64,000 nucleotides of DNA from Octopus bimaculoides (taxonomy: Eukaryota). A program made the translations under genes and the position numbers. Shown here piece by piece: positions 20,087 through 64,000 of this stretch (positions are counted from its first letter, which is position 1; each line of letters starts with the position of its first letter). The stretch is taken from assembly GCF_001194135.2 (NCBI RefSeq), contig NC_068983.1, positions 43,462,978 through 43,526,977 of the forward strand, in the 5' to 3' direction. Under the pieces are notes generated by a model. It was not told the DNA's origin, did not search any database, and worked only from the letters and a program-made list of their open reading frames with translations.

Positions 20087-20495
20087 TTTTTCTCTTTACT
20101 CTTTTACTTGTTTCAGTCATTTGACTGCGGCCATGCTGGAGCACCGCCTTTAGTCGAGCATATCGACCCCAGGACTTATTCTTTGTAAGCCTAGTACTTA
20201 TTCTATCGTTCTCTTTTGCCGAACCACTAAGTGACGGGGACATAAACACACCAGCATCGGTTGTCAAGTAATGCTAGGGGGACAAACACAGACACACAAA
20301 CACATATATATATATATATATATACATATATATGACGGGCTTCTTTCAGTTTCCGTCTACCAAATCCACTCACAAGGCTTTGGTCGGCCTGAGACTATAG
20401 TAGAAGACACTTGCCCAAGATGCCACGCAGTGGGACTGAACCCGGAACCATGTGGTTGGTAAGCAAGCTACTTACCACACAGCCACTCCTGCGCC
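20087..20495 (-). mobile_element. tRNA-headed SINE with CORE-like segment and internal (TA)n, full-length copy. Related copies near 1715-2185, 21330-21680, 32300-32710, 33270-33690, 37430-37830, 50020-50130, 50630-51150, 52790-53125, 62880-63270
   Basis: Recurrent head GGAGTGGCTGTGTGGTAAG...GGTTCAGTCCC, ACCTTGGGCAAGTGTCTT (CORE-like) and tail GACTGAAACAAGTAAAAGAG. Confidence 0.8.
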
Positions 20496-20857
20496 TATAA
20501 AGCCACTCCTATATTTCTTATGGTCCCTCTTTCTTGTTAACTTTCTCACTCCCTTTTTTTCTCTCTGGCTGGGTAACCAAGTACCTTCTCTAGAGCAAAA
20601 CATCTGTTTCTGTCTCTGTTGCACTATAATCATTCATCATCTGACATAAGATCACCTCCTCCAATGCCCCCTCTCTTCTCAAAAGATCTTTGTCTTACAA
20701 AGTTACTTGGCGGGCCTATCAGAGCAGGCACCATTTAAAAAGCATCCAGTCTACATAGTAAATGATTGGCATTTGGAAGGGCATCCAAACTGCCCTAACC
20801 ACCGGACCATTGCGCCTCCACATAGCTAAAGTATGTATACAGAGAAACTGTCTGTGT

Positions 20858-36427: not shown

Positions 36428-36736
36428 ATGAAAGGTGCTAAGGGCCAACGCAAGTTAGTGAAAGCTAACATTGCAGACGGTTCTACCATCATTGTTAAAC
36501 ATCCACAACCAAAACACAGTAACCAAATAAATTCCAAATCTAAAAAGGAGCCAAATAATCTGAGAACCTCCACTGCTTTTAACAACCCTCAACCAGAACA
36601 GGGTATGGATTTGTCTGTGGTGCCAAATAATTCCCATCCGTCCTCATCTTCCAGTAGTTCTATTGTCTATACAAAAGCTAAGAGATACTCAACAGAGCCT
36701 CTGTCAGACTCACTAAATTCCAGTGGACAATTACAG
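36428..36736 (+). CDS. BLZF1: Golgin-45 coding exon 1 (MKGAKGQRKLVKANIADG...SSGQLQ); exon acceptor at 36354/36355
   Basis: Polypyrimidine tract + CAG at 36352-36354, in-frame upstream TAA at 36407, CAG/GTAAGT donor, phase 0 compatible with the next exon; poorly conserved N-terminus. Confidence 0.65.
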
Positions 36737-39834: not shown

Positions 39835-40098
39835 AGAGTTTTAAAACCTGTGAATGTGGTCGATCCATTGATGGCAACCAGTGTTGATATGACAGTTAGT
39901 ACTAATAATTTGGATGGAGGCAACCATTCTAATACCAGTGCTGGAGAAACTTTGAGTGGTTCTGTGATACCATCTTCCATTTCCCACCTTGATTTAATCA
40001 ATGGACCAAAATGTTGGAGAGATTCTTGTAATGATGAAAAGAAATATTTCCAACGAGAGATTGATTCATTAAGATCCCAGCTAGATGTTCAAGTACAG
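39835..40098 (+). CDS. BLZF1: Golgin-45 coding exon 2 (RVLKPVNVVDP...EKKYFQREIDSLRSQLDVQVQ)
   Basis: TTTTCCAG acceptor, CAG/GTAAGA donor, 264 nt, phase 0/0; ends in the coiled coil leading into the conserved core. Confidence 0.85.
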
Positions 40099-42079: not shown

Positions 42080-42156
42080 GTGAATAGTGAATTAAAGAAA
42101 TTGCTGGTTGCCTCCCTTGGTGAAGATTTACAATATCGAGTGGAGAAGCTGCTGAG
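42080..42156 (+). CDS. BLZF1: Golgin-45 coding exon 3 (VNSELKKLLVASLGEDLQYRVEKLL)
   Basis: Matches human VNRELKKLLVASVGDDLQYHFERL; TCAG/GTAGGT; 77 nt, phase 0/2. Confidence 0.93.
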
Positions 42157-42850: not shown

Positions 42851-44101
42851 TTCCCTTTCTCTCTTTCGGAGAGGCACAAGCACATACACAGACATATACA
42901 CACATGGCAGTAACTTCCGCCTACCAAATTCAATCACAAAGCTTCGGTCAGCCTGGGGCTATAGCAGAAGACACTTGCCCAAGGTGCCACACGGTGGGAC
43001 TGAACCCGAAACCATGTAGCTGGGAAGCAAGCTTCCATTATTATTATTTATTATTATTATACACACACACACATATGCAAATGAGTAGAATGAGATCTGG
43101 ATTCAGAGAGCTCAGAGCACCTTTTGTGGCCTTGGCTATCAAGTCCACATACTAATCAAGTACAAATTAATATAATGTTAACCTATGGAAGTCAGGTGGA
43201 GAAGACTCATTAAGCCAGATGAAGCCGTAGTTACTTTCCTGACTTTTGTGCATAATTCTGTGTACTGTACATGCACCTTTGATGAGTTGTAGTGCTCCTG
43301 AGCACTATACACAGTTATTTTGTTATTATTATACTCTTATAAATAGATGACCCCCTTGTACAAAATAAACAACCTCTACTATGAATAGCTAAAATCATCA
43401 TTTAACATCCACGTTCCATGCTGGCATAGGTTGGACGGTTTGACAGGATGTGATGGGTCCAAGGGACTGTATTGTGCTCCAGTCTCCTCGTTGGCATGGT
43501 TTCCACCCTTCCCAATGTCGACCACTTTACAGTGTCTTATCTGGGTTGTTTCATTGGACCATTGGTACCATTGAGGTCACCATGCAGCTTACAAGCCTAC
43601 AAAACACAAGGCCCGATGGACTCAATGCTATCAGTTGACAGTTAAGGAGAAAGGGTGGGACACAACAGGTTCTTGTTATAGGTGAGTTACATGGCTGCTT
43701 ACATTTAGAAGAGAGAGTGAGGAAGGAATCATTAGTAGCTGCAAAGCGATAAATATTGGTGATGAAGTGTCCAGGTGGCACTTCAAAGTATGAGCTAATA
43801 TTCGTCAGCCATTAACAAGAATTGAAAGTCAACTTTATCATTTACAAAGATAAAATATCTTCATTTGACTTGATGGTCTTAGTAGTTTTTAAAGAAAAAT
43901 TCTTTTTGAGAAGGTACTCTGAGATGAAAGGCAAAGCTGATCTCGGTGGAATTTGAACTCAGAATGTAGAGACAGGCGAAATACGTCTAAGCATTTTATC
44001 CAGTGCCCTAACAATTTTGTCAGTTCGCTGTTGCCTTAATGATGATAATAATAAAGGATAAATTTATCCAATTATATTTGTTTGTCTTCATGTTTTTACA
44101 G

Positions 44102-44224
44102 GGATAAAGCTCAATTATCTTTGGAAGTCGGTGGTTATACAAAGAAAGTTTCAGAAGATTATGAAAACCTTGACCGATTGTCCATTCAAGCTGACATTTG
44201 GAGAAGCAAATTTATGGCCAGCAG
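44102..44224 (+). CDS. BLZF1: Golgin-45 coding exon 4 (DKAQLSLEVGGYTKKVSEDYENLDRLSIQADIWRSKFMAS)
   Basis: Matches human ...LERMSIQCDVWRSKFLAS; TACAG/GTAAAT; 123 nt, phase 2/2. Confidence 0.93.
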
Positions 44225-45918
44225 GTAAATTACTTCCACAATAAATTCTTATTAACCCTTTCGATACCAACCCAGCTGAAACCGTCTTGTTTCCATAAAT
44301 TTTGAATTAAAATCTTCCACCAAACCATAGTCACAATTTATGTTCCTAACATTAGCTTAATGATAACCAAGTTATTTTACTAAATTTTTTGTTATATTTA
44401 AAATTAATTGAAAGAAACACAGAGCATCTCAAAATAGATATGGTAACAAAAGGGTTAAAATATATAATAGCAAAACCAATTCTTAACCCTTTTGATACTA
44501 ACTCGGCTGAAACCACCTCTGGCTCTGTAGTACAAATGACTTGTTTTCAAAAGTTCTGAATTAAAATCTTCTACCAAACCTTATCCACAATATATGTTCC
44601 TCACACTAGCTTAATGATGACTAAGTTATTTTACTAAATTCTTTGTTATATCTAACGTAATTGAAAGAAACACAGACCATCTCAAAATAAATGCAGTAAT
44701 GAAAGGGTTAAAATTTTGAAAATATAAATGTAACATTTAAAAGTATTTACTTGGCTGATTAGTATAATGAGTGTGGATGGGAGGAGTATAGGATTCATAA
44801 TACTTAATCTTTGGCAGCTATTGGCAGTGATATCACATGTTTGGTAGCTATTAGTGATGTTAGTTGACAATTTTCTGTTAACAGTTCATCCAACAAGAAA
44901 AAAAAATGAAAGAGCTGGAATATGAAAATTCTTACTTTTATTATATACGAGGTCTGTTCAAAAAGTATTAGGACTGGTGCTAAAAAAAAAAAAAAAAAAG
45001 AGATCTACAACACATCAATCCAGCATTTAATCTCCTTCGAATTAGTCCCTTTCTAAAGCCGCACACTATATCCAGTGTTGTTTCCATGGATGGAAGCATT
45101 CGTGGAACTTCTCTTTTGGGATAGCAGGCTTCTGCCTCATTTCATTCTCTTGGATTTCCTCAAAATCTTGAAATCTTGTTGGAGTCTTCCACTGCAAAGA
45201 CCCACACTTTGTCACTAGCCATAGACCCATGCTTTCTCTTCTGTTGTGGCTGTTTTCAAAATGTCTTTCTTTCTCGGCACAATCCAGAAGATCCTGTGCA
45301 GCTGCAACTTGATCTACACTTGACAAACTTTACTTCCAAGCACTACTATAAACAGTGAAAGTGAGCAAGAATGTTACAGCTTAGTGTGCATGTGAGACAG
45401 AGTTCAAGGCGTACCTGTACCAAGCAGCTTCATTCAGTGTACTTTAGCTCTGTTACCATAGCAACAATCCTGATATTTTTTAATCAGATCTTGTATTTAT
45501 ATACATATATATGTATGTGAATGTTTTTTTCTCACTTCACATTAAATCTGTTGAGCTAACAAAGCTAGTTTATTGACATGCTCTGCCAACAAAATCGTTA
45601 TCTAGTTCTGTGCTTTTGAAGGTATTTGGATTTTTTTAAAAATCTAATCTCTTGCTTGAAAAACAGGTAAATGTGAGCAACAAGAAGGGTATATTTCCAG
45701 TTAAATAAACAGAATAAAAAATTATACTCAGTTTAGTGTGATTTTTCTGAACTGAACACATATCACATAAAAAATTGTTTCTTGTTGATTATTCAGTAAC
45801 TACATCACAATCACTATAAAACCACATTACTCTAGCGTTCCACTTCTAAACACCATATTATTGTACTGTTTTGAAATATAGATGCCATATAAAATACTTT
45901 TGTATTTTCTCCTATTAG

Positions 45919-46047
45919 AGTTCTAATTGATGAACTGGCCAAAGGAAGAGGATTGTTATCTTCCCAATATCAAGAATCTCAAGATGCCATTCAAAGGTTG
46001 TTAAACGAACGACATGAATTACAGTCTCACCTCATGGAATCTTACAA
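45919..46047 (+). CDS. BLZF1: Golgin-45 coding exon 5 (VLIDELAKGRGLLSSQYQESQDAIQRLLNERHELQSHLMESY)
   Basis: Matches human VMADELTNSRAALQRQNRDAHGAIQDLLSERE; TTAG/GTAAGT; 129 nt, phase 2/2. Confidence 0.92.
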
Positions 46048-46756
46048 GTAAGTCAAAAAAACATTTATTAATTTTATCTAAGGCCTCAGCCAGTCCACTT
46101 AGGCGAACCTTCCTTCATTGGACACGAAACTCAGTTTGCAAAGACTTATTGGGGCAAGCGAAAGCGAAATCGGGATGGCACCTGTGCCCAGCGTCCCCTT
46201 TCTGGCACTTGTGCCCACAGCATGTGTAAGGACTTTCGAGAGAGATCGTTGCCAGTGCCCCTGGACTGGCTCTTGTGTGGGTGGCACATAAAATACACCA
46301 TTTTGAGCGTGGCCATTGCCAGTACTGCCTGACTGGTCTTCGTGCCGGTGGCGCATAAAAAGCACCCACTACACTCTCTGAGTGGCTGGTGTTAGGAAGA
46401 GCATCCAGCTGTAGAAACTCTGCCAAATCAGATTGGAGCCTGGTGTCGCCTCCTGGTTTGCCAGTCTTCAGTCAAATCGTCCAACCCATGCTAGCATGGA
46501 AAGCGGACGTTAAATGATGATGTTTTAAACTGGAAAAGTCAAATGGCTACATGGATTAAGTTGTTAGACTGGTATTATATTAGTCAAGGGTTCAAATTAC
46601 TTGCAAATATTTCATTGTGCTTTTAAACTAAATTTTGATTAAAGTGTTAAATTTGTGATTTAGGTAGAACTAGAGAAAGCTAAATCATAGATAATCCTTT
46701 TGTAACCAACTTGTCAGAGATTACTTTTGATTTTCGGGTACAAGCTTCTTATTTTA

Positions 46757-47392
46757 ACCCTTTAGCATTCTGATTATTCTACCAAATCTAATACTTATTT
46801 ATTCGCAGATACAGAAGTAATTTATTCTCAAACGCATGATAATGCTAATACAATAGCATGAACAGAATAAACTATCCATATATTGCAGAAAAATTTGTTA
46901 GTAGCCATGAGAATAAATTATTTCCATATCTTTCAATACATCTCAATGCTTCTAAAGCAAACTTTGTTTGTTTACTTTCATCGTAAGTTGAATTTATTTA
47001 TTCAGGCCGTTGCCAGTACTGCCTGACTGGCCTTCGTGCTGGTGGCACGTAAAAGCACCCACTACACTCTCGGAGTGGTTGGCATTAGGAAGGGCATCCA
47101 GCTGTAGAAACTCTGCCAAATCAGATTGGAGCCTGGTGTAGCCATCTGGTTCACCAGTCCTCAGTCAAATCATCCAACTCATGCTAGCATGGAAAGCGGA
47201 TGTTAAACGATGATGATGATTTCAAATTAATCATGCATTATCTCATAGCTTTGAGATTTTGATGATATAATTGTTTATTTTTAGAATGATGTTATAGGGT
47301 TGGTGTGAGAGTCTGTATCTGGATGGTTTGAGCATAAAAACAGGTAGAATATTTGGGCCAGATATGGCCAGTTTAAATGCTAGAGGGTTAAA
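46757..47392 (+). mobile_element. Second TTAA-bounded MITE family, interrupted by insertions; related copy at 9603-9827
   Basis: TTAACCCTTTAGCATT...AATGCTAGAGGGTTAA termini. Confidence 0.55.
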
Positions 47393-48109
47393 GTCATATA
47401 GATTCAAATGGCACTTTGAAATTTCATGTTAAAGTTTATTGCAAAATTCAGCTCAATAATGAGAAATTATTTCACTAAATCTTTCCTTGTTTTCAAAATT
47501 AAATGAAATATAGAGTGTGTATTTCAATAGAAATATATATTAACAAAAGGATTCAAGATCACAGCCATAGCCTATACCAGTGTCACATAACCAGCCCGTT
47601 TAAAAAGTACCTTTGAATTGTCAGGCGACATGCCGTGCTTGAGGAGACCTATTGAGTCAAGTAAAATCAAAATCAAAAATCAAATCATAATCAAATGGGA
47701 ATGGTGGTTGTGGCCATGCCAGTGCCACCTGACTGGCTCCCGTGCTGGTGGCATGCAATAAGCACCATTCATGCGTGGGTTGTTGCCAGTGCTGCTTGAC
47801 TGGCTCCCATGCCAGTGGCACGTAAAAAGCACCCACTACACTTTTGTAGTGGTTGGCGTTAAGCAGGGCATCCAGCTGTAGAAACCTTGCCAGATCAGAT
47901 TGGAGCTGGGTGCAGGCTACTGGTTTGCCAGTCCTCAGACAAGCCATCCAACCAATGCCAGTGTGGAAAACGGACGTTAAATGATGATGATGATGATTCA
48001 TAGGGTTAGAATATTCAACCCAAGCAAGCATGAAAATGTAGTTTTCAAAATGATGATGAGGAGGAGGAGGACGTACAGTTCTTTTATCTTTAATTCTTGA
48101 ATATTTCAG

Positions 48110-48347
48110 ATTTTTGAAGCAAGTCAATGAGGCATTTGATCCACTGAATTCTCAGAATCTCTTCTCATTACCAAACACTTCCAACATTTTAGAATTAGTT
48201 AAACTCATACAACAGCTCTCTGAAGCCATCCGTTTTCGTCTTCTGCCCGGGAGGGTCTCTTTACCAAGTTCTACATCACCCCTTCAGTCCGGAAGCAATT
48301 TTGCTGCTCAGAATGCATTAACTCCAGCCGAAGCTCAAGCACAAGAG
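48110..48347 (+). CDS. BLZF1: Golgin-45 coding exon 6 (FLKQVNEAFDPL...ALTPAEAQAQE)
   Basis: TTTCAG/GTGAGC; 238 nt, phase 2/0; TPAEAQA matches human TPAEKMA. Confidence 0.85.
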
Positions 48348-48563
48348 GTGAGCAGTCTTTCTATTTATTACCTTTCATTTCTACAGATAATATTTCCTTT
48401 TTATTGCTATTGTTATTATTTAATATCTCTGTTCTGCTTGGCTCAGGTAGACCCAAGGTGGGTGTCAGTTGAACACTTCACAAAGACTCAAAGGTCTCCA
48501 TGTGATTATTGATGTTGTTTAGTCTTAGATTAATCCTGATTGAACAAACCTAGGTCTACTAGT

Positions 48564-48714
48564 TTACTTGTAAGATTCCATGAGGTGAGACTGTAATTCA
48601 TGCTGCTTGTTTAACAACCTTTGAATGGCATCTTGAGATTCTTGATATTGGGAAGATTACAATCCTTTTCCTTTGGCTAGTTCATCAGTTAGAACTCTAA
48701 TAGGAGAAAATACA
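48564..48714 (-). pseudogene. Inverted duplicate of golgin-45 exon 5 including both splice junctions
   Basis: Reverse complement aligns gap-free to 45901-46051 with 8 differences in 151 nt. Confidence 0.92.
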
Positions 48715-50552
48715 TAAAAACATTATCGTCATCATTATTTAGCCCTTTTGATACCAACTCGGCTGAAACCGGCTCTGGTTCTGTAATACAAATGCCTTGT
48801 TTTCATAAGTTTTGAATTAAAATCTTCCACCAAACCTTAGTCACAATTTATGTTCCTAACACTAGCTAAATGATAACTAAGTTATTTTACTAAATTCTTT
48901 GTTATATTTAAAATTAATTGAAAGAAACTCAGAGCATCTCAAAATAAATACAGTAACGAAAGGATTAATATCCATTTTCCATGCTGGCATGGGTTGGATG
49001 GTTTGACTGAGGACTGGCAAGCCAGTAGGCTGCACCCAGCACCAATCTGATCTGGCAAGGTTTCTACAGCTGGATGCCCTTCCTAACACCAACCGTTCTG
49101 AGAATGTAGTGGGTACTTTATACATGCCACAGGCATTGGAGCCAGTCAGACAGCACTGGCATTGACCAGATTCAAATGGTGCTTTTAATGTGCCACTGGC
49201 ATGAGAGCCAGTCATGGGTACTGGTATCAACTATGTTCAGATGGTGCTTTTTACATGCTACTGGCACAGGGAGCCAGTCAGGCAGCACTGCAGAGTATTT
49301 TATGCAGTATCTAGATTTCAAAACAGTACAATAACATGGTGTTTAGAAGTGGAACACTAGAGTAATGTGGTTTTATAGTGATTGTGATGTAGTTACTGAA
49401 TAATCGACAATGAACTATTTTTATGTCTGATTTGGGAACACTCTGTACTTTATACATGCCACCATCACCAGCTGGGTCACCAAGTAACGTGCAAGATGAA
49501 GACCTCTTAGTCAGCAGGGGGAATGGAACCACAGGAAGTGGCTTTGTGCCAGGTAAGAGATTAGGATATAATAGAGGGATAGAGATGGGAACAAAAGGAT
49601 TAAAAAGAGAAAAGTATGTTAATAGAATTTGAATGAAGTTGAAGAACACAAAGCTTCCTGAAGTTGATTTCATAAGGTTTTTTTGAGAATGAAAATATGT
49701 TGTAGAGAGAAATAGTTATTGAAATGAAATGAACATGAACAGCAACAAATAGAGACTGAATACTGGAGATGAAGAGAAGATCAGGAAGAGTGGGTGGGTG
49801 AGTTCATAAGAGTGAGAGGATAGTGGCAGGTAATTTAGAGAGAGATGGACACAGAAGTGAATATGATGAATGATGTACAAGGGTGAAGATGTGGTCAATG
49901 GTAAATATCGGTAAAAGGGAGAAGTCAAAAGAGGTAGCTCAGGAAGGAGGAGGTGGTAAGTGGAAGTACAAGAAGGATGGAGAATAGTTGTATCATAAAC
50001 TTGTACATATAAGTGCAAGAGTGGCTGTGTGGTAAGTAGCTTGCTTACCAACCACATGGTTCTGCGTTCAGTCCCACTGCGTGGTACCTTGGGCAAGTGT
50101 CTTCTACTATAGCCTCGGACCGACAAAAGCCTAACACGAGCTTAATGATAACTAAGATATTTTCCTAAATTCTTTGTTATATTTAAAGTAACTGAAAGAA
50201 ACACAGAGCATTTCAAAATAATTACTGTAACGAAAGGTTAAGCAAGAGAACAGCATATGCAAAGGTTTTCAGTTTTTATCAATTGTCTTGAGCCTCGAGT
50301 TCAGTGCCTTGAGATAAACAGCATGTTTGGTACAGCATCACACTTCTCTGTTGCTTGTACAGTACGATTCCAATCACAAGTTCCTTTCTGGCTGTTGAAC
50401 TTATTTCCATTTATTGTAATGTAGGTGCAGGAGTGGCTATTTGGTTAAAAAGTTCATTTTGCAACCATGATTTGAAGTGCAGTCTCAATGCATGACTGGT
50501 GTTTTCTACTTTAGCCATAGGAAGCCTATTGTGTGTGTGTGTGTATATATGT

Positions 50553-50586
<34 letters not shown>

Positions 50587-52226
50587 ATATATATATATAC
50601 ATATATATACACACACACACACACACATATCCTTTTATTTGTCTTAGTCATTTGATTGTGGCCATGCTGGAGCACCGCCTTTAGTCAAACACATCGACCC
50701 CAAGACTTATTCTTTGTGAGCCTAATACTTCTTCTATCAGTCTCTTTTGCCGAACCGCTAAGTTACGGGGACACAAACACACCAGCATCAGTTGTCAAGC
50801 GATGGTGGGGACGCAAACCCAGAAACACATATTTATGTCCCCTGTAACTTAGCAGTTCAGCATAAGACCAATAGAATAAGTACTAGGCTTACAAAAGAAT
50901 AAGTACTGGGGTCGATTTGCTCAACTAAAGGCGGTGCTCCAGCATGGCCGCAGTCAAACGACTGAAACATATAAGAGAATAACTTATAGACACACACGCA
51001 CACACACACTATTGGGTTCTTTCAGTTTCTGTCTACTAAATCCACTCACGTGGCTTTGATTGGCTGGGGACCAAAGATTCCACATAGTAGAACTGAACCA
51101 ATGACCATTTGGTTTGAAAGCAAACTTAACCACACAGCCACTCCTGCAAGTGTTTGGTTAAAAAATTCCCCCTACAACTTATGTAATTGTAGGTTCAGTC
51201 CCATTGCATGATACCTTGGTTACTTCACTGTTTAAATGCTACCTTAGTTACAGTACATCCTTTGCAGTCTCAAACCAAAGGCGGAACCACTATGCAGTCG
51301 CTCAAACAGTTAGAAATAGCAGTCAAATAACTCTGAAAATACACCTTGAAAGGACAAATTAAATAATGTATAGTCTGAGATACTCCTAAAAAAAATAGCT
51401 AAGATGGTCAAAGCTAGAACGTCTTTTGTTATAGGGCTGCTCAATCAGTTCTGACCTAGGGCTAAACAACAATCTGTATTGTCTTTTGATTTAATTTTTT
51501 AATTAAGAATGTTATTCAGAACCTAATTCATTCTCTAATATCTGAAAATTTATCATGCTGTCTTTAAATGTTTGTTAATATTTCGTCATCATCATCATCA
51601 TCATTAGTAATCGTCATCAACGGTTTAAGATTTTTCCCTACATTTAATGTGTTTGGTGAATGTGGAGGAGCAGGGGGTATGGGGGATTATCCAATGTTAA
51701 TTAAAATTGCATCTGCGTTGAAGAAAGAAAATTTCATTAGCTACACAATCAAGACTAGTCATAAAGACACGGGAGACAACTCTGAAATTTTATTCATTCC
51801 AGAGTTACTTCCCTTGCCTTAGAATTAATCATTAAACTAATGTCTTTTCTATCCTCCCTAAGATTCAAATTTAAATTTCATTACTGACTACATTAACTAA
51901 ATTAGAACTCATTTTATTACCAAGTATTTTCCATGCAGAAGGTATCCATGGGTATTCCACCGCCCCCAGTCATTTCTCCGTTTGTTTATGTTTTTTTTTA
52001 ACATCTACTTTTCTATGCTAGCATGGGTTAGATATGGCATTGTGGCATTGTTCGCTGCTGGACGCCCTTCCTATCGCTAACCCATACCTGTTTCTCATGT
52101 AAAGGGTTTCTTATTCCACACATCTTCAAAAGTGCAAAGCCAGGAAGTGGTTCGTTGACAGGGGAAATGACAACATCACCACCACCACTTGTAGCTCAGC
52201 AATTTCAATGAAATGTGAATGTAAAC

Positions 52227-52463
52227 CAGTGTTGCTCAACCGTTATTTTACCCATGAACCCCTCCGATTCCTATTCTACTCAGGGGTACCCCCATAGCCA
52301 TCCGATGTTTAGAAAACCCTATTATATTTTTAGTATTAAATATTATTGGGAAATGAATAAAGAAAATTAAAATGTTATAACCAATTTATTTTGCATAAAT
52401 TTTAACAACAAAATCTTATAATGGACTCTCAAGGGTCTTGTAGACTCCAGTTGAGAACCCCTG
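52227..52463. mobile_element. hAT (Buster/Charlie-type) MITE with intact 8-bp TSD. Related copies 56320-56543 and ~33128-33757 (the latter split by a SINE)
   Basis: TIRs CAGTGTTGCTCAAC / GTTGAGAACCCCTG; ATGTAAAC duplicated at 52219-52226 and 52464-52471 (nnnTAnnn). Confidence 0.85.
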
Positions 52464-53160
52464 ATGTAAACAGTCAAACAATAGGCACATACACACATAC
52501 ATATATACATGCATGTATGATGTACATACATATATATATATATATATATATACATATGTACACATGCTCACACACGTATACGATGGGGTTCTTCCAATTT
52601 CCCCCTGACAAATTCACTCACAAGGCTTCAAATGCTCTGGGGCTGTAGTAGAAGACATTTGACTGAGCCTCTGTGAAGTAGGACTGAGCCAAAAACCATG
52701 TGATTGGGAAGTGGATGTTTTAACTATACAGTCCTGAATTGGTAACTGGTCAATATCTTCTTTTAATCTTTTTATCTTTTTACTCATTTCAGTCACTTTG
52801 ACAGTGACCATGTTGAGACACTGCCTTGTTTAAATTTTAGTCAAATGAATCGACCCCTGTACTTATTTTTTCTTTAAGCCTGCTATTTATACTACAGGGA
52901 TGTAAACTCGCTAACACTGGTTATCAAGTGGTGGTGGGGGATAAACCCACTCACACACATATATATGACAGGTTTCTTTCAGTTTCCATCTACCAAATCC
53001 ACTCAAGGCTTTGATTGGCCTCAGGCTATAGTAGAAGACACTTGCTCAAGGTGCTATACATTGCGACTGAACCTGTAACCATGTGGTTGGGAAGCAAGCT
53101 TCTTACCACACAGCCACACTGCGCCTATATGTACATACATACATACATATATATATATAT

Positions 53161-53538
53161 ATAACGTTGTAGTATATTGTCAACTTAATGTGACAATCCC
53201 AAGAAGGGAATACACTACTGCCGTTTAGCCCTAGGAAGCTGGATCGCTTCCTGTCGGCCTTGACACTATACTATGATTATATAAGTTGCGAGAGCTAGAC
53301 AAACTTCTTCAACCAGCTGGCAGGCTACTTCAGGCTGATGACGAGCAAAGACTCAGAAACATGTCCCTGAATGCTGGCTAGGCTGGGTGGAGGAGTTTGT
53401 CTCCCCCTCGCAAACTTAAGGACACAGTAATTGTGTCAAGGCTGACAGGAAGCGGTCCAGCTTCCTAGGGCTAAACGGCAGTAGTGTATTCCCTTCTTGG
53501 GATTGTCACATTAAGTTGACAATATACTACAACGTTAT
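53161..53538 (+). mobile_element. Foldback element with 106-bp inverted arms and a central hammerhead ribozyme
   Basis: 53161-53266 vs 53433-53538, 2 mismatches; inner region also self-complementary. Confidence 0.9.
53329..53371 (+). ncRNA. Type I minimal hammerhead ribozyme motif
   Basis: UUCAGG-CUGAUGA-c GAG caaaga CUC a-GAAA-C AU G-UC|-CCUGAA: 6-bp stem I, intact core, palindromic ACAUGU stem III, GUC cleavage triplet ending at 53365. Confidence 0.75.
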
Positions 53539-56500
53539 CGCACCACTACTGCTTAAATCTCTCTGAGAGATTTAGAAATATAATATTTCTAATATATATA
53601 TATATATATATATACACAACACACACGTGATGGGCTTCTTTCAGTTTCCATCTGCCAGATCCACTCATAAAACTTTGTTAGGCCCATTGCTATAGTAGAA
53701 GACACCAGCCCAAGGTGCCACAGAGTGGGACTGAACCTAGTTCCTTGTGGCTGGGAAGCAAACTTCTTACAATGCAGCTATGTCTGCACCTAGTGTAGTA
53801 ATAAATTATATGTCCTTAGCTCCAAGAAACTTTTAAGGGCCAGATGTTGTTGTTTAGTCACAAATCAACCCTGATCCTCACAAACAGAGGTAGTTTTGAA
53901 CCTTCACACATGTTGCTAGTCTCTAATCCAGCACATGGTGATCACCATGACCTCTGACCCTTGCATAGCATGGTTGAGAACCCAGTTTTGCTGATGTATT
54001 TGACTGATTCATTGATTTTTTTTTTTTACTTTTAATCTTCGAAGGTCACTGTGTCAATTGTTTTGGCCATTATCTCTATTTCTAATTGACATTTAATCCA
54101 TTAGAATTGTTTTTCTCTTTCCGTCTCATTTAATCCCTCTCAGTTGTTTATTCAATGTCTCTATATCATTTAATATAAAACTTGTGTGGTAAGGAGCTTG
54201 TTCCCAATCACATGGTTCTGGGTTTCGCCCCTCTGCTTAGCACCATGGAGAATGTCTTCTACTCTAACCTCGAGCCTACCAAAAGCTCATGGGTGGATTT
54301 AGTAGACAGAAACTGAAGGAAGCTTGTCGTGTGTGTGTGCTTGACAACAAGTGTTTGTGTGGTTATGTCACAGCAACTTAGCAGTTCATCAAAAGAGACT
54401 GCTAGAATAAGTACCAGGCTTTAACCCTTTTTGTTGCCATATTTCTGTTGAGATGCTCTGTGTTTCTTTCAATTAATTTTAAATATAACAAAGAATTGAG
54501 TAAAATAACTTAGTTATCATTAAGCTAGTGTTAGGAACATAAATTGTGACTAAGGTTTGGTGGAAGATTTTAATTCAAAACTTACGAAAACAAGACATTT
54601 GTACTACAGAGCCAGAGGCAGTTTCAGCTGGGTTGGTAACAAAAGGGTTAAATAAAAAAAAGTACTCGCATCAATTCAATTGTCTAAAAAGGTAGTGCCC
54701 CAGCTTGGCTGCAGTTTAATGATTGAGACCAGTAAAAGATATGAGGAAAAGATTAAGGCGGCGAGGTGGCAGAATTGTTAGCATGCCAGGCAAAATGCTT
54801 AGCGGTATTTCATCTGCTGTTATGTTCTGAGTTCAAATTCCACCAAGGTCGACTTTGCCTTTCATCCTTTCGGGGAAGATAAATTAAGTACCAGTTACGC
54901 ACTGGGGTCGATGTTATCGACTTACTCCCTTTGTCTGTCCTTGTTTGACCCCTCTATGTTTAAGCCCCTTGTGGGCAATAAAGAAATAAGTAAAAGATAT
55001 AAGGAAAAAAGGTAATTACTCATTAACACTAGTCTCTTCTTTTAAGTGGTAAAGAGGCAGGGTTGTTAGCATTTCAGACAAAATGCTTAGTGAAGTTTCT
55101 TCTAACTCTTCATATTCTGAGTTCAAATTCCACTGAGGTTGACTTTGCCTTACGTCCTTGGGGTTGACAAATTAAAGTATTTATCAAGTATTGGCAGAGT
55201 CATTGATGTAATTGACTGCTCCCCCGCCACTTCAAAATTGCTGGCCTTGTACCAGAATTAGAAAGAATTAACACTGCTGTCATCTTCTACAACCCTCACT
55301 ATCTGATGAACCTTGCATTAGCTTTGACAACGAGTCTTTCTTCAATCAACTAGACTAATTACTTGTTAAATTTAATTCATTATCATAATTTAAAATCTGT
55401 TTTTCATGCTGGTATGGATCAGACATTTTGACAGGAGCTGACAAATCAGAGAACTGCATCAAGCTCAACTTTCTGTTTTCTACAGCTGGATGCCCTTCCT
55501 AATGCCAATGCTCTTCTTAACATGCTGACTGAGTATTCCACAGACATGCCTTAATGTAATCCTCAGGCCAAATAAGCATGACACAACATTTGACATGGCT
55601 ATTCCTTTGAACTACAGGCACCATCCATTTGTTGGGATTCCTAACAATTTCTATCTACCCATTTTTTTCTTCCAAGTCAACCTGAGACTTGTAAGATGTC
55701 ATGCAATGAAATTGAACCAAGGACTTCATGATCAAACAGAGTAGCAAAACTATATCAATCTCACAAGCATATATCTTACCTCTTCATTAAGGAACTACTT
55801 GAAAGATCTTTCAGTATTGCTTCTTCTCAAACTAATTAGTAAAACAAATTCACACACATGCATCATCATCATCGTCGTTGTCGTCATCGTTTAACATCCG
55901 CTTTTCATGCTGGCATGGGTTGGACGGTTTGACTGAGGTCTGGCAAGCCAGAAGGCTGCACCAGGCTCCAATCCGATCTGGCGATGTTTCTACAGCTGGA
56001 TGCCCTTCCTAACACCAACCATTCTGAGAGTGTAGTGGGTGCTTTTTACATGCCACCAGTATAGGAGCCAGTCAGGCGGCACTGGCAATGACCATACTTG
56101 AATAGTGCTTTTTACGTGCCACTGGCACGGGAGCCAGTCAGGCGGCACTGGCAACGATCACGCTCAAATGAGGCTTTTTACGTACCACTGGCACGGGGTC
56201 AAGCAGCACTGGCTTCGACCACGCTCAAATGCATTGTAGGAATTTAGAAACTTTGAGAGATATGAGGTGTGTTATTTATAATAAAGAAATTTAAAGTAGA
56301 TAATGCTTTGCAGATAACTCAGTGGTTCTCAACCACTTTTTTACCTGTAGATTCCTATTTCACTCGAATAGACCTTGCTAGCCATTCGTTGTTTTAAAAA
56401 TCCTATTATATTTTTGTACTTAAACATTATTAGGAATTGTATAAAATATTGTTAAAATATTTTGTGTTGTAGAAGTATAACCAACTGATTGCACATAAAT

Positions 56501-59500
56501 TTTAACAACAAAATCTTATATGGACCCCGGTGGAGAATCACAGCTGTAAAAAATAGTGTGTAGAATATTAGGTTAAAAAAAAATCCTCCTTGGGTGGAAA
56601 AACAATCAAAGGCTGTCTGTGGCACTTGAACCTACATTTTTCTGTAAGCTTGACAGACGTTCTGCAGTTGTATCAAAGCAACACTTCAAACTTTTTACCA
56701 TCCACTTTAGAAGCTTTGTTTTTACCTGTGAGAATTGTATATTGTTTACATTACAAGAATTTAGAAACTTCAAGAGATATGAAAAAGTGAGTCATTTTGG
56801 CTTCAAGTTTTGGCATAAGGCCAGCATTTTCAGGGGAGGGGAGGAGTCGACTATCTTCAACCCCAAAAGGATGAAATTCGGTGAAATTTGAACTCAGAAC
56901 ATTAAGACAGACAAAATACTGTTCAGCATTTTACCCAGTGAGCACTGGCATAGCTAGAGTGTGTGCCACCTGGTACAGCCCTTCTGTTTGCTGCCCCTTG
57001 ACCCCACAAAAAAAACCCATATTGCTTACAACAGACCTAAAGTGCCCCCCCCCTCTCCCAGCTACACTAGTGCCGGTGAGCTTATGATTCTGTCAGCTTG
57101 CCACCTTGAAAGTAAATCATTTCACTTGTGGAACTTGAAGAAGATAAAACTACAAATGAAAGTGTGTAAATATTGGGTTATGAAAGCCTTGGGACTCAAA
57201 CTCACATCTGTGAACATGACGAATATACCAAATATACCAAACCAATATACCAAAGCAACATTTTGAATTTTCTTCATCCAATTTAGAAACTTCATTCCTA
57301 ATGTTTTTTTTATATTGTTAGAATTTAGAAATTTCAATATGAACAGCTTACAATTCTCCTTCAATAAGAACAAAACTGATGAAGAAAATTTGAAATGTTG
57401 CTTTGGTATAATGGTAAAACATCTGTCATGTGTACAGATGTGAGTTCAGGTCCTGTGAACAGCCTTTGATTTTTTTCTCCATCCAAGGGATTTTCTAATT
57501 CAGCATCCTACATGCTGTTATCCACCTTTACATTCTGAGTTTGAATTCTGCCGAAGTTAACTTTGCCTTCTTCCTATCAGGGTCAATAAAATAAAGTACC
57601 CATTGAATATTGGGCTCGATATAACTGACTTAACCTTTCCCCTAAAATTGCTGGCTTTGTGCCAAAATCTGAGACCGTTATTATTATTCCACTGAGGTCG
57701 ACTTTGCCTTCATCCTTTTGGAGTCGATAAAATAAGTTACCAGTTGAGCATGGGTCAATGTAATCAACTTATCTCCCCCACCTCACTTCACCCCAAAGTG
57801 CTAGCCTTGTGCCAACATTTAAAACCAATATTCTGCATACTATTATCCATAGCTTTATCTAATTCAAGGTCCACCATTAAAAATAGCATACTTCACACAC
57901 AGCTTTTATGAAATACTTGCCTGTAATTTCCAATTTAAAATTCACAAAAGTGTTTTCACTCTTTTCTCTTTTCTGCATGTTTTACTGTAGGGTTTTTTTC
58001 ATTCTTTTCTTTTGGCTGTTATTCTTAAGAAATCTATATTTCTAGTTTGTTGATCACTTTGTTTTTTTTTTTTGTTTTTTTTTTTTTACTTCCAAAAATG
58101 GTTGTTTGTTTTATTTATTTACTTGTTTAATTTTTCTTAAACTTCCATTGAAATATTTTCCGAGGAAATTGCGTCGGATGGAGAAGACAATCATCATTAC
58201 TATTTAATGATCATCTTCCATGCTGGCATGGGTTGGATGGCTTCATAGGATCTAATGAATCTGAAAAGTGCTGTGTGCACCAATGTCCGATTTGACATGG
58301 TCTCTGTGGCTGGATGCCTTTCCTAATGCCAGTCTCTTCACAACATGTACTGGATGCTTCTTTCATGGCACCAGCATTAGTGAGGTTGTCATGCAGCTTG
58401 CAAGATTAAAATCCTGAGAGAGGTGGCTTTATGTTAGGGGATGAGAGATTAAAAGTATGAGAGAAGGTGCCAGAACAGAAATGGTTTCTTGCTGTAGAGG
58501 AGCTACATTTTAGAAGAGCGGGTCTGAGCACTCACAGTGGCACTACAAAAAGCTAAAAATAATGCCAATGAAGTATTAGAGTGGGCCTTCAAGATAGAAG
58601 ATGCTTAAGAGTGAGAGGGAACAGGAGAACAGGAAATGTGGGTGGGTGGAAATAGTGTATGGGAGAGAGAGAGAGAGACTGTTAGAAATCAAGAATGGGT
58701 GAAGCAGTAAATAATAGCAAATTGTAAACAGAAAAAACAACAAAATGATTTGATATTAGGGATCTCTTAATTTTTGAATTTCTTTCTTCATGTGTTTCAC
58801 AAGTAAAAGAATGTACCAAAATTCTATAAAGCTGTCTACAAAGCCAATATAAAAATTTAACCATCTCGTGCCATGTTCCTGGTATAGTGAAAGTATTTTA
58901 AACATAATCTCTACTGGATTCCCATTAAAGCAGTAATGAACAACACACGTAGGGAAAAGAAGATAAAATACTGAAAATAGACAAGCAATCACATTGCAGC
59001 TTTGGAGTCAGCTGTCTTTATGACTCATTGTTAACGGTGGCCTCCATACCTGTTGTTTACTTTTGTTTTTAATCGCAAAAAAAGAAATGATTTTGTGATG
59101 AAACAAGTATGTGACGAACCCAGCACCTCATCTTGTAAATAAGCAAGGACTAGACTCTTTTATGGTTGAGGAAATTATTGATGACATTTATTCTTCAGAT
59201 GAAGAGTTTACATTTATACAGACAATGAGAGTGAAGCAAACAATCAAACTGGTGAAAAAGATGAGGAATGTTTCGGCTCAGCTAAACAAATACAGCAGTT
59301 GAGAGAGATAGGCCTATTATTGATATTCTGTGGAATTTTTTTGTGATTCTCTCCATTAGTTTTCCCGCAATCATTACTCTTGAGTTGCACATGCAACTAT
59401 TTTTTGTTTTGCTCAGGAACCCATGTGGCAGGTAAAGTTAGACGCAGGGGTCCAAGTCCGAGAGGGTTAAGCTTTTAGCAACAGTTTGGTAAAGTCATTG

Positions 59501-59891
59501 CAACTTCAAACAAAATACCTGCAGTATTTAATTATGGTCATTTATGTCCTGAGTTCAAACCTTACCAACGTTAACTTTGTCTTTTGTCTTTTTGGGGTTA
59601 ATAAGATTCTGTTTGTCTATGTTTTTACTTAGTCTGAGGTGAAAGGAGGTGGAAATCTGTTAGAAAAGTGTGCATATTAGAGATGGGGGTAGATCTTGGT
59701 TTCATGATAAATGTGCAAGTTATGTGAGCCAAGAGGTCAGGCTGATCCCATGTATATAGCAAATAAATAGAGGTGTTTCCTTCTTGCCTTCATTCCTGAT
59801 GGAGTCATGGAGGTGCTACCATGAGATACAATGTCTTGGGAATTTTCACCTGACAGAGCACATTCTTTTCTGGATATAAGAACAATTTCTT

Positions 59892-59926
<35 letters not shown>

Positions 59927-61410
59927 TATAAAAAATAAACACATGCACTCACAAATTGAGAGAGAGAAAGAGAGAGACGAGTCAGCTCCAGTACTAGACT
60001 GGTACTTTATTTATTAACCTTGGCAGGATAAATGATGAAGTTGATTTTGATGAATTTGAACTCACAGTGCAGAGAGCCTGAATGAACACCACAATACCTC
60101 ATGATCCTTATCATCATCATTATTGACCTCCTAGACATAATTGTCTTGAGCCCAAGGACACAGGGGGCCAGTTGCCCAGGTCCCATGGTGTGTAAGTGAT
60201 CAAGGTCCCCACCCCCCGAATGAATGCCGATCCGTTGCAGGGTTATTCATTTACAATCAAGTAGACTTTAGCAACATGAAACTGTTTTGCTCAAAAACAC
60301 AACGCATCGCCCAGTCCAGAAGTTGAAACTACGATCTTGCAATCATGAGTGCAACATTTTAACCACTCAGCCATGTACTTCCACACTCATCTGCATATAT
60401 GTAAATTACACATACATTTATGTAAATAAATTAGTGATTCCATAAGAAATAACACCAACAAAGAACGGGACACCAGTCTGTCATAGGTTTATTTATTTAC
60501 AACTGAGTGGACTGAGGCAAAATGAAATGAAGTGTTTTGCTCAAGAACATAACATGGGTTAGGGAATTACGGTCTTGATTTTGCAATCCTGAATACAGCA
60601 CACTAACCACTGAGCCACATGCTTTTATACAGAACCACAAGGCATCCTAAAAGCTGTGGCAGCTGGGATTTATGAGAAAAATCAATGTAAGAGAGAGAGA
60701 AGTGTGGAGGTATTTGGTATTGGAAAATCTATCAAATCCATACATAACGTAGGAAAAAAGTAACCATATACTTATGAAGAGATGTATTTCATTTATTGAC
60801 TGTTGGTCACACTATTTTTTTTTAATAACTGGGCATTTTTGGATGATAGAATACTTATACAGAAATCAATATTGAAATTTTATTTTATATATTCATTTTC
60901 ATTTCTAACAAAAATACTTCCTCTTCTTTTTTTCTGTATTTGTGCGTGTATATATATGGACAGGTCTGATGATGCAAACAGGGATAATAGCACTCAAAAC
61001 ATATATATATATATAAAATGCAAGGGTCAAGGTGTAGGAAGAAAGTTAGCTTTAAGCAAACCGTATTGAATTTTTAAAAAAATAACTTTCAGGAACAATA
61101 GTGGTTTATTGAGACAGAAGGTTGTGGATTTTCTTCCTGTGAAAGTACAATAAATTGAAAAAAATTATTTTGATATTTTCATGGTAGGCAATCAGGGTTG
61201 TCAGGTATGTGAATAAGAATACAAGAGTTAAGGAATTGAGTCGATAAGATCCGGGTTAGATATGTTTCATAGCGAGCGAAACCTTGGAAGTGGTAAAAAT
61301 CCAAGCGAGGGATATACCACAGGCTACTCTTTGAGCCAAGGATATCTTGATTAAATGAAAGTTTACATTGTCACAAGCAGGTTCATGTTAACACATGGAA
61401 GATTCAATCA

Positions 61411-61455
<45 letters not shown>

Positions 61456-62328
61456 NNNNNNNNNNNNNNNNNNNNNNNNNNNNNNNNNNNNNNNNNNNNN
61501 NNNNNNNNNNNNNNNNNNNNNNNNNNNNNNNNNNNNNNNNNNNNNNNNNNNNNNNNNNNNNNNNNNNNNNNNNNNNNNNNNNNNNNNNNNNNNNNNNNNN
61601 NNNNNNNNNNNNNNNNNNNNNNNNNNNNNNNNNNNNNNNNNNNNNNNNNNNNNNNNNNNNNNNNNNNNNNNNNNNNNNNNNNNNNNNNNNNNNNNNNNNN
61701 NNNNNNNNNNNNNNNNNNNNNNNNNNNNNNNNNNNNNNNNNNNNNNNNNNNNNNNNNNNNNNNNNNNNNNNNNNNNNNNNNNNNNNNNNNNNNNNNNNNN
61801 NNNNNNNNNNNNNNNNNNNNNNNNNNNNNNNNNNNNNNNNNNNNNNNNNNNNNNNNNNNNNNNNNNNNNNNNNNNNNNNNNNNNNNNNNNNNNNNNNNNN
61901 NNNNNNNNNNNNNNNNNNNNNNNNNNNNNNNNNNNNNNNNNNNNNNNNNNNNNNNNNNNNNNNNNNNNNNNNNNNNNNNNNNNNNNNNNNNNNNNNNNNN
62001 NNNNNNNNNNNNNNNNNNNNNNNNNNNNNNNNNNNNNNNNNNNNNNNNNNNNNNNNNNNNNNNNNNNNNNNNNNNNNNNNNNNNNNNNNNNNNNNNNNNN
62101 NNNNNNNNNNNNNNNNNNNNNNNNNNNNNNNNNNNNNNNNNNNNNNNNNNNNNNNNNNNNNNNNNNNNNNNNNNNNNNNNNNNNNNNNNNNNNNNNNNNN
62201 NNNNNNNNNNNNNNNNNNNNNNNNNNNNNNNNNNNNNNNNNNNNNNNNNNNNNNNNNNNNNNNNNNNNNNNNNNNNNNNNATATATATATATATATATAT
62301 ATAATATATATATATATATATTTGTTTG

Positions 62329-62766
62329 TTTATTAATATTTAGCAAAAGCAACAGAGTGACTCACAGAGCTTTACACATTAACACTTATCAAACTAGATA
62401 CAGATTGAGGGCTTATGAAATTATGTACCAGCGATAATAACATTTCCCTGGATAGTTCTGGAACAAATTATAAAAACAATTTGAACATCAGGTGGATAAT
62501 TCATATTTCAAATAGTATACCAATTATGCTGTTCAGTAAGTAAATACATAAATAAATATTTACTTATTGAGCAGCATTGGAAATATGAATTATCAACCTG
62601 ACATTCTAATTATTTTTATGATTTGTTCCAGAACTATCCAAGGAAATACTATTATCACTGGTATATAACATCACAAGCCCTCAATCTGTGTCTAATTTGA
62701 TAAGTGTTAATGCATAAACCTTCCAGTTCTTGAGCCACTCTGTTGCTTCTGCTAAATATTAATAAA
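62329..62766. mobile_element. ~440-bp imperfect palindrome (foldback MITE-like)
   Basis: Left half is the reverse complement of the right half almost to the centre (e.g. TTTATTAATATTTAGC...CCCTGGATAGTTCTGGAACAAAT / ATTTGTTCCAGAACTATCCAAGG...GCTAAATATTAATAAA). Confidence 0.8.
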
Positions 62767-64000
62767 AACGTAAAGGAGTGGCTGTGTGGTAAGTAGCTTG
62801 CTTACCAGCCACATGGTTCCNNNNNNNNNNAATTAATCCTTTGTCAGCTGCCTCTATTCTAACTAGACATTTCGAAGATACATAGGCGCAAGCATGGCTG
62901 TGTGTGGTAAGTAGCTTGCTTACCAACCACATGACTCCAGGTTCAGTCCCACTACATAGCACCTTGGGTAAGTGTCTTCTACTATAGCCTTGGGCCAATC
63001 AAAGCCTTGTGAGTGGATTTAGTAGACAGAAACGGAAAGAAGCCCGTCTTACATATATGTATATATGTGTGTGTGTGTCTATGTTTGTCCCCCCACCATC
63101 ACTTGACAACTGATGTTGGTGTGTTTATGTCCCTGTAATTTAGTGGTTCGGTGAAAGAGACCAGCAGAATAAGTACTAGGCTTACAAAGAATAAGTCCTG
63201 GTGTCGATTTTTTTGACTAAAGGTGGTGCTCCAGCATGGCTGCAGTCAAATGACTAAAACAAATAAAAGAATATATATATANNNNNNNNNNNNNNNNNNN
63301 NNNNNNNNNNNNNNNNNNNNNNNNNNNNNNNNNNNNNNNNNNNNNNNNNNNNNNNNNNNNNNNNNNNNNNNNNNNNNNNNNNNNNNNNNNNNNNNNNNNN
63401 NNNNNNNNNNNNNNNNNNNNNNNNNNNNNNNNNNNNNNNNNNNNNNNNNNNNNNNNNNNNNNNNNNNNNNNNNNNNNNNNNNNNNNNNNNNNNNNNNNNN
63501 NNNNNNNNNNNNNNNNNNNNNNNNNNNNNNNNNNNNNNNNNNNNNNNNNNNNNNNNNNNNNNNNNNNNNNNNNNNNNNNNNNNNNNNNNNNNNNNNNNNN
63601 NNNNNNNNNNNNNNNNNNNNNNNNNNNNNNNNNNNNNNNNNNNNNNNNNNNNNNNNNNNNNNNNNNNNNNNNNNNNNNNNNNNNNNNNNNNNNNNNNNNN
63701 NNNNNNNNNNNNNNNNNNNNNNNNNNNNNNNNNNNNNNNNNNNNNNNNNNNNNNNNNNNNNNNNNNNNNNNNNNNNNNNNNNNNNNNNNNNNNNNNNNNN
63801 NNNNNNNNNNNNNNNNNNNNNNNNNNNNNNNNNNNNNNNNNNNNNNNNNNNNNNNNNNNNNNNNNNNNNNNNNNNNNNNNNNNNNNNNNNNNNNNNNNNN
63901 NNNNNNNNNNNNNNNNNNNNNNNNNNNNNNNNNNNNNNNNNNNNNNNNNNNNNNNNNNNNNNNNNNNNNNNNNNNNNNNNNNNNNNTCTTCTATTATAGC

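Follow-up and report, generated by a model that had tools for sequence, protein, structure and literature searches.

An inverted exon 5 copy within intron 6 of the Octopus bimaculoides golgin-45 gene: a probable neutral micro-duplication

The golgin-45 gene of Octopus bimaculoides lies partly within a 64,000-nucleotide stretch of genomic DNA (hereafter the window) and contains two versions of its exon 5, one in the coding orientation and one inverted in a downstream intron. An earlier note on this DNA had proposed that the inverted version is a candidate editing-complementary sequence (ECS), which would either drive A-to-I editing of the exon or mask its splice sites and promote skipping. This locus raises the question of whether the inverted copy is a selected regulatory device or a structural variant that happens to be complementary to a coding exon. 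Recoding is extensive in coleoids (PMC8382921), and in metazoans, O. bimaculoides among them, ADARs act mainly on young inverted repeats (PMC9989829).

The golgin-45 gene model and the extent of the inverted copy

The exons in the window are 100% identical to XP_014779668.1, which is golgin-45 isoform X1 of O. bimaculoides. In a HMMER search, the conceptually spliced exons led to a 437-aa protein with 100% identity over 277 residues, and the gene name was taken from the protein cluster. A human BLZF1 sequence served solely as an exon-finding probe and was replaced by XP_014779668.1. In a protein word-index search, the 43-aa exon 5 peptide had no match, and the only matches of a 110-aa query were to a rotifer protein and to two ORFs called where a more distant relative has the orthologous exon. 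Searches against Pfam and PDB sequences gave coiled-coil matches that were all sub-threshold, and a golgin-45 family model was absent for testing.

By mapping the protein back to the window and reading the junctions, the coding part of exon 1 was placed at 36428–36736, exon 2 at 39835–40098, exon 3 at 42080–42156, and exon 4 at 44102–44224, all on the forward strand. Exon 5 (45919–46047, forward strand) belongs to the coiled-coil region, is 129 nt long and in frame, and encodes residues about 258–301. Its translation, (R)VLIDELAKGRGLLSSQYQESQDAIQRLLNERHELQSHLMESY(K), matches XP_014779668.1 at 100%, and its splice sites are an AG at 45917–18 and a GT at 46048–49. Exon 6 (48110–48347, forward strand, 238 nt), which lies between exon 5 and the inverted copy, was identified by tblastx against a distant orthologous locus and by tblastn, and its junctions read ttcag/A at the acceptor and GAG/gtgagc at the donor. 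Intron 6 (48348–64000 within the window, forward strand) is about 31.6 kb in length and runs off the window, with exon 7 located beyond the window end. The C-terminal 57 aa of XP_014779668.1 have no match in the window and are encoded by exon 7 at the window-equivalent positions 79958–80131. The CM046603.1 (GCA_001194135.2) locus, whose sequence agrees fully with the window when coordinates are shifted by 35427, was used to place this exon, which occupies 44531–44704 there. Window positions convert to CM046603.1 by adding 43,462,977, which puts exon 5 at about 43,508,896–43,509,024 and the inverted copy at about 43,511,541–43,512,403.

Exon 7 and alternative terminal exons were also sought within the window, and none were found. 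A weak exon 7 candidate at 56721–56801 was rejected, as the true exon 7 is about 31 kb downstream of the copy and outside the window. In the annotated set from O. bimaculoides and O. sinensis, the golgin-45 isoforms part right after exon 6, with endings that read ...AQAQE, AAKHDVIVGTYQH, or IYKKFCIKKSVN before the stop codon. These alternative endings all lack the conserved C-terminal ...NCCSHCKGDIFVA tail, and the corresponding terminal exons are common to the two species and located outside the window. Intron 5 is 2062 nt long in O. bimaculoides, where at least three copies of one SINE family crowd it (46157–48000), but its counterpart in the distant orthologous locus (10211–10549) has just some 340 nt. 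This contrast illustrates repeat-driven intron growth in Octopus. The octopus repeat landscape is dominated by SINEs (PMC9068888).

For the inverted copy, the earlier note had reported 48564–48714 as a gap-free reverse complement of 45901–46051 with 143 of 151 positions identical. Re-alignment gives the same result. The exon coordinates and the AG and GT dinucleotides confirm that the match spans the entire exon 5 (129 nt, in frame) together with both splice junctions, and the position of exon 7, about 31 kb further downstream, confirms that the copy is part of the golgin-45 transcription unit, 2.5 kb downstream of exon 5. The original description needs to be refined in three respects. First, the downstream intron that holds the copy is intron 6, 217 nt past exon 6, and not an intron that adjoins exon 5. 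Second, although the 151-nt match is right, the full duplicated unit is larger (287 nt), and the copy of this unit is split by an insertion. Third, an in-frame stop codon is present in the copy. The within-window BLAST E value of the inverted match is about 1e-63 (1e-47 for the second piece), and a chance match is therefore excluded. Moreover, a repeat finder independently returned the same inverted pair (163 nt at 92%).

The larger unit is apparent from a second match, in which 45765–45898 corresponds to 49426–49294 at 91%, such that the duplicated segment extends over 45765–46051 with 91–95% identity. It consists of the last 154 nt of intron 4, the whole of exon 5, and 4 nt of intron 5. The intronic part of the source arm (45765–45918, forward strand) is the end of intron 4 with its branch-point, polypyrimidine region, and AG, and the stretch 45898–45918 carries on into the second of the two copy pieces described below. 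At the distal end of the duplicated segment is the start of intron 5, GTAA (46048–46051, forward strand), and the alignment stops exactly at 46051/48564. On the reverse strand, the copy is found as piece A (49294–49426), the counterpart of 45765–45898 in intron 4 (91% identity, with 11 mismatches and 1 indel), and piece B (48564–48718), which includes a pseudo-exon 5, the 3' splice region, and GTAA and contains the 143/151 gap-free match.

The insertion that separates the two pieces (48719–49293, 575 nt, without assigned strand) is composed of two interspersed repeats. Element 1 is about 235 nt (48735–48972), while element 2 is a SINE-like sequence of about 320 nt with 66-nt internal repeats (48965–49290), and both have many copies in the window at 75–92% identity. 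In the copy, the break falls close to the counterpart of 45898. A target-site duplication for this repeat insertion, degenerate and some 10 nt long, may be present near the equivalent of 45889–45898; no clear target-site duplication was identified, either for the repeat insertion or for the whole copy. The arms themselves occur only twice in the approximately 80 kb of the locus (the window plus the 45.7-kb gene locus) and are therefore not a repeat family within that range. In a transposon pair, the arms come from a multi-copy interspersed family; the golgin-45 arms instead consist of exon 5 with flanking intron sequence, which is single-copy in the window save for the duplicate, and only the 575-nt insert is repeat-derived.

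Within the 151-nt match, the mismatch classes are exactly those claimed, with five G.U, two A.C, and one U.U in the hypothetical duplex. The G.U or U.G mismatches are at 45927, 45937, 45948, 46007, and 46011, and the U.U mismatch is at 45957. The A.C mismatches are at 46009 (in a GAA codon) and 46012 (in a CGA codon). Both are third codon positions, and editing at either would be synonymous.

Predicted pairing in the golgin-45 pre-mRNA

The alignment and the exon 7 position support the structural premise of the proposal, namely that the golgin-45 pre-mRNA contains a copy with complementarity to exon 5 and to its two splice sites. For the duplex between 45898–46051 and 48564–48718 (a 154-nt arm), the energy predicted by ViennaRNA is -253 kcal/mol, and a second stem formed with copy piece A has a predicted energy of -178 kcal/mol. 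Furthermore, in the minimum-energy fold (ViennaRNA) of an intermediate that contains exons 4, 5, and 6 and the start of intron 6, exon 5 is paired with the copy along its full length. According to these models, the formation of dsRNA at exon 5, and hence access by ADAR, is physically plausible. The copy would fold back on exon 5 while the approximately 31.6-kb intron 6 undergoes transcription and awaits removal, and because of the length of this intron, the copy and exon 5 should coexist for minutes in the nascent transcript. The distance between them would be 2.5 kb in the primary transcript and about 450 nt after intron 5 removal. The expected product would be a duplex of about 154 bp with 95% pairing, which may be extended by the second stem of 134 bp.

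Such a duplex would be a generic ADAR substrate and may lead to incidental and promiscuous A-to-I editing of both exon 5 and the intronic copy. In general, A.C mismatches are favored targets of ADAR, a 5' G neighbor provides a poor context, and long near-perfect duplexes are deaminated promiscuously. From a 154-bp duplex with 95% pairing, promiscuous hyper-editing would be expected, and not editing limited to the two A.C mismatches. Editing would recode the protein at 27 of the 46 adenosines in exon 5, and A46012 is preceded by a 5' G. No record of golgin-45 (BLZF1, GO45) editing was found in the supplements of Shoshan 2021 and Zhang 2023 or by full-text search, and a literature search for ECSs that arose by exon duplication found nothing relevant.

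For splicing, the duplex would enclose the intron 4 3' splice region as well as the four leading bases of the exon 5 donor. Occlusion of the exon 5 splice sites is possible to some degree if this structure forms. However, a search for exon 5 skipping among all eight annotated golgin-45 proteins from the three Octopus species found none. These proteins all differ after exon 6 only, and the annotated isoforms argue against substantial exon 5 skipping.

Two other features of this region may be relevant to RNA processing. An inverted pair of SINE-like sequences (47784–47980 and 48965–49161; 197 nt, 86% complementary) brackets exon 6. One member is 129 nt upstream of the exon 6 acceptor, and the other is 617 nt downstream of the donor, inside the insert that splits the copy. 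Judged by sequence, this arrangement is a classic geometry for exon circularization and hyper-editing. Pairing between these SINE-like sequences would cross, and so compete with, the stem formed by exon 5 and the copy. The other feature is at 48578–48590 on the forward strand, where the inverted copy creates CCATGAG/GTGAGA. This sequence is a strong match to the 5' splice site consensus, lies some 240 nt past the start of intron 6, and could support a cryptic exon.

Absence from congeners, decay of the copy, and competing explanations

The complete and gap-free golgin-45 genes of O. sinensis and O. vulgaris were used for comparison. Arm searches and tblastn across the whole gene revealed no second exon 5 copy in either species, and the exon 5 arm matches once in each gene, at exon 5 itself; in the O. 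vulgaris locus, the orthologous exon is at 16361–16489. In a more distant orthologous locus, no copy is present within 10 kb on either side of exon 5. Conservation in other octopods, which the earlier note had put forward as a check, is thus contradicted by the golgin-45 genes of O. sinensis and O. vulgaris, from which the copy is absent. The exon 5 peptide is identical in O. bimaculoides, O. sinensis, and O. vulgaris.

The synteny of intron 6 ends at window position 48565 in the comparison with O. sinensis and at 48541 with O. vulgaris, and resumes at 50832 in the window. This loss of synteny coincides with the left edge of the copy. The 2.27 kb that is specific to O. bimaculoides comprises the copy, 586 nt of unique sequence (49427–50012), repeats, and a microsatellite, while the orthologous site in O. 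sinensis and O. vulgaris has 0.56–0.96 kb of unrelated sequence and is not a clean empty site. About 0.5 kb at the copy site is common to O. sinensis (locus 19247–19740) and O. vulgaris (19942–20620), and nothing in the O. bimaculoides window matches it. At 50526–50634, the window has a compound microsatellite that is palindromic, (TG)n(TA)n(CA)n, and O. vulgaris has a (TA)n tract where its synteny with the window breaks (locus 19939–19961).

This pattern of absence may reflect either a gain of the copy on the O. bimaculoides branch or its loss on the other one. The copy branch has 13–15 changes per 287 nt, which is somewhat longer than expected if the duplication post-dates the split of O. 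bimaculoides from O. vulgaris and O. sinensis (Poisson p about 0.1). Because of this long branch, and because the orthologous site is not cleanly empty, gain and loss are indistinguishable. For polarizing the three sites that separate the original and the copy from O. sinensis and O. vulgaris, two outgroup loci were considered and were too diverged (71–73% in the exon). The long persistence of the copy could be read as weak retention.

The sequence changes in the copy are informative about its constraint. When read in the exon frame, the copy translates to VLTDELAKGKGL, a stop, and SS..., in which the stop is an in-frame TAA (TTA>TAA). The other coding changes are I>T, R>K, and NERH>NKQH. In a four-way alignment of the original, the copy, O. 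sinensis, and O. vulgaris over 287 nt, three site patterns were counted. Changes found only in the copy number 13 (7 opposite the exon and 6 opposite the intron), compared with 3 found only in the original and 3 at which the original and the copy differ from the other two species. With O. vulgaris as the reference, the private changes are 14 in the copy and 3 in the original (p about 0.008–0.013); in the exon part, the numbers are 7 and 1, respectively. The density of copy-only changes is 7/129 in the exon-facing part and 6/158 in the intron-facing part (Fisher p = 0.58). By these counts, the exon-facing part of the copy is no better conserved than the intron-facing part, and the copy, with its in-frame stop, is a dead pseudo-exon without the constraint seen on the parent exon.

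The types of change are also consistent with neutral decay. Over the 287 nt, the transitions between the two arms would produce 9 G.U and 6 A.C pairs (p = 0.30), in addition to 4 transversions and 3 indel columns. Because every transition yields either G.U or A.C, transition bias is sufficient for the observed G.U pattern (5/8), which needs no selection for pairing. The A.C mismatch at 46012 arose by A>G in the copy, and the one at 46009 goes back to a G>A change in the exon that is synonymous and later than the duplication, with G present at 46009 in the copy, both congeners, and the distant orthologs. The copy changes at 46007 and 46011 are CpG>CpA. For the intronic arm, the divergence of 9% equals or exceeds that of O. 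bimaculoides introns from their counterparts in O. sinensis and O. vulgaris (5–9%), and slowed decay therefore need not be invoked. The differences between the arms are clustered, with 4 within 6 nt at 46007–46012 (GAACGA vs. AAGCAG) and 4 within 5 nt at 45884–45888. Such clustering suggests multi-nucleotide mutation, or error-prone synthesis as the duplicate was made, and not point changes that arose one by one.

Taken together, these findings indicate that the copy is probably an old, unconserved, and neutrally decaying inverted intragenic micro-duplication, and that its effects on editing or splicing, if any, are incidental. In the proposed scenario, a 287-bp genomic piece would have been copied in reverse orientation to a position 217 nt into intron 6. 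Because the exon was accompanied by intron sequences, 154 nt from intron 4 and 4 nt from intron 5, this was a DNA-level event and not a retrocopy. The copy would then have decayed without constraint through a stop codon, missense changes, and CpG-type transitions, and would also have been split by SINE-type insertions. RNA effects are accordingly regarded as by-products of a neutral structural variant and not as the output of a selected regulatory device. Both observations that the earlier note had named as contrary to its proposal, neutral decay and absence in close relatives, are now made for this copy.

Neutral decay is still compatible with a molecular effect at present, as a duplex with 95% pairing is near ideal for ADAR. 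The copy might act as a "newborn" ECS that targets the exon, with clustered A-to-I editing of exon 5 mRNA in O. bimaculoides only and not in O. vulgaris or O. sinensis. This is a tentative reading, and one that we would expect to fail somewhat more often than it succeeds. If true, up to 27 recodable adenosines in a conserved coiled-coil would be involved, the locus would be a natural presence/absence proof that inverted exon duplication seeds recoding sites in cephalopods, and the G>A change at 46009 would be the first step of co-evolution between the exon and its ECS. The change at 46009, which is a single site, is what a "restorative editing" scenario would predict.

It is unlikely that selection has maintained the copy, whether as an ECS directing exon 5 editing or as a regulator of the in-frame skipping of exon 5. 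Several features would suit such a function, including the complementarity that covers the exon along with its two splice sites, the high stability predicted for the duplex, the long pairing time provided by the long intron 6, the extensive recoding in coleoids (PMC8382921), and the two A.C mismatches, one of which came from a G>A in the exon after duplication. However, the copy is missing in O. sinensis and O. vulgaris despite their identical exon 5 peptide. It carries a nonsense codon and 13–14 private changes vs. 3 in the original, changes about four times faster than the original, and is no slower opposite the exon than opposite the intron. Furthermore, changes that preserve wobble pairing show no excess, editing at either A.C site would be synonymous, exon 5 is included in every annotated isoform, and golgin-45 editing was not found in the literature and supplements searched. 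These results speak against the selected editing or splicing device that had been envisaged for the copy.

A different origin for the copy, by transposon capture or templated break repair, also has a low probability. Under this hypothesis, the copy would be one passenger in a lineage-specific insertion that extends from 48564 to about 50831. The copy is indeed at the left edge of the 2.27-kb segment that lacks a counterpart in O. sinensis and O. vulgaris, this segment also has the 586 nt of unique sequence, several repeats, and the microsatellite, and the clustered changes at 46007–46012 and 45884–45888 would fit error-prone synthesis. Nevertheless, the outer boundaries of the copy have neither terminal inverted repeats nor a target-site duplication, and the 287-nt unit and the 586-nt segment each occur once more or never within about 80 kb of the locus.

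Other RNA outcomes are very unlikely to dominate at this locus. These include the dicing of the hairpin into endogenous siRNAs that target golgin-45 and the promotion of exon 6 back-splicing or skipping by the arms. In Drosophila, hpRNAs are long intramolecular hairpins built from the sequence of a gene itself. A hairpin of self-sequence is also the architecture of young plant MIRNA genes (10.1101/682591), and the arms at this locus bracket intron 5 and exon 6, with the inverted SINE pair bracketing exon 6 as well. On the other hand, Rfam has no match at the arms, and the hairpin is not conserved in O. sinensis or O. vulgaris. The Rfam and tRNA scans of 44000–51000 gave nothing meaningful. Sub-threshold Rfam "miRNA" matches on both strands at 50524–50638 were taken as low-complexity artifacts of the (TG)n(TA)n(CA)n microsatellite.

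Finally, a copy mis-joined or collapsed in the short-read O. bimaculoides assembly is most improbable, because although this assembly is rich in gaps (8 N runs in the window and more downstream) and exact-ORF look-ups (the exon 6 ORF and an ORF over the 49426/49427 junction) matched no independent O. bimaculoides assembly, an artifactual duplicate would be near-identical instead of having 5–9% divergence and its own repeat insertion, the sequence is contiguous and free of N over 39078–61455 (a range that takes in exons 2 to 6 as well as the copy), and both flanks of 48566–50831 show synteny with the intron 6 sequences of O. sinensis and O. vulgaris.

With the neutral micro-duplication as the preferred explanation, the golgin-45 locus is one more example of nearby inverted repeats, which are the standard source of ADAR substrates. 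Its single unusual trait is that one arm is a constitutive and conserved coding exon. The comparison of golgin-45 between O. bimaculoides and O. vulgaris or O. sinensis is best viewed as a natural presence/absence experiment and not as a demonstrated regulatory element. This experiment is ready-made because the congeners share the exon 5 peptide but not the copy, and because the literature cites DNA data with matching RNA data for both O. bimaculoides and O. vulgaris. For O. bimaculoides, PMC8382921 cites runs from neural and non-neural tissue under PRJNA270931 and PRJNA285380; the O. vulgaris accession is PRJNA300723. The experiment asks whether the gain of a long exon-complementary sequence creates species-specific recoding, whether such recoding is promiscuous or site-selective, and whether splicing is disturbed. 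If nothing occurs at the RNA level, the locus would be a decaying structural variant of no further interest.

Comparison with known systems

The inverted copy has features in common with several known systems. As in inverted Alu or SINE pairs, copies in opposite orientations are found a few kb apart in one pre-mRNA and have a long near-perfect predicted duplex, and the arrangement is lineage-specific, young, and unconserved, with editing expected as a by-product (PMC526178, PMC9989829). Unlike those pairs, one of the golgin-45 arms is a constitutive coding exon with its splice sites and not a transposon, and the unit is a two-copy segmental duplicate and not a member of a repeat family. For this reason, hyper-editing of that arm, should it occur, would be carried over into the mature coding sequence.

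Complementary intronic sequences that promote circularization or skipping provide another comparison. In this case, the likeness is that complementary arms flank exon 6 in one pre-mRNA, while the differences are that the upstream golgin-45 arm includes exon 5 and its splice sites and that the annotated isoforms retain exons 5 and 6. Hairpin RNA and young MIRNA loci also result from a partial inverted duplication of genic sequence, which generates a long fold-back complementary to the parent gene (10.1101/682591). In those loci, both arms are in a separate transcription unit and are defined by small RNAs, whereas the golgin-45 arm is a functional exon inside the parent pre-mRNA.

The recoding site in SLC9A6 is a precedent for the creation of dsRNA by a new inverted pair, in which a LINE pair made the recoding of an exon possible (Pinto et al., 2014; PMC4053846). 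As in golgin-45, the inverted repeat pair arose anew. However, the SLC9A6 arms are LINE fragments, one of which was exonized, and the pair is fixed and conserved across mammals with validated editing. In comparison, the golgin-45 arm is an ancient exon, its copy is unconserved, and any editing is putative.

Classical ECSs are short and imperfect and are usually located in the adjacent intron. The golgin-45 copy is similar to those of GRIA2 (Q/R and R/G sites) and of Drosophila ion-channel genes in being a downstream intronic sequence that may pair with an exon (PMC4053846). A classical ECS is conserved together with its edited site, for example at more than 70 of 81 nt across mammals (PMC4053846). 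In contrast, the golgin-45 copy has 154–287 nt with 91–95% pairing, is one exon and two introns away from exon 5, is absent in congeners, and decays at least at the intron rate. Judged by conservation and by pairing-preserving substitutions, neither of which is seen in the sequences compared, the resemblance of this copy to a classical ECS is apparently one of geometry only.
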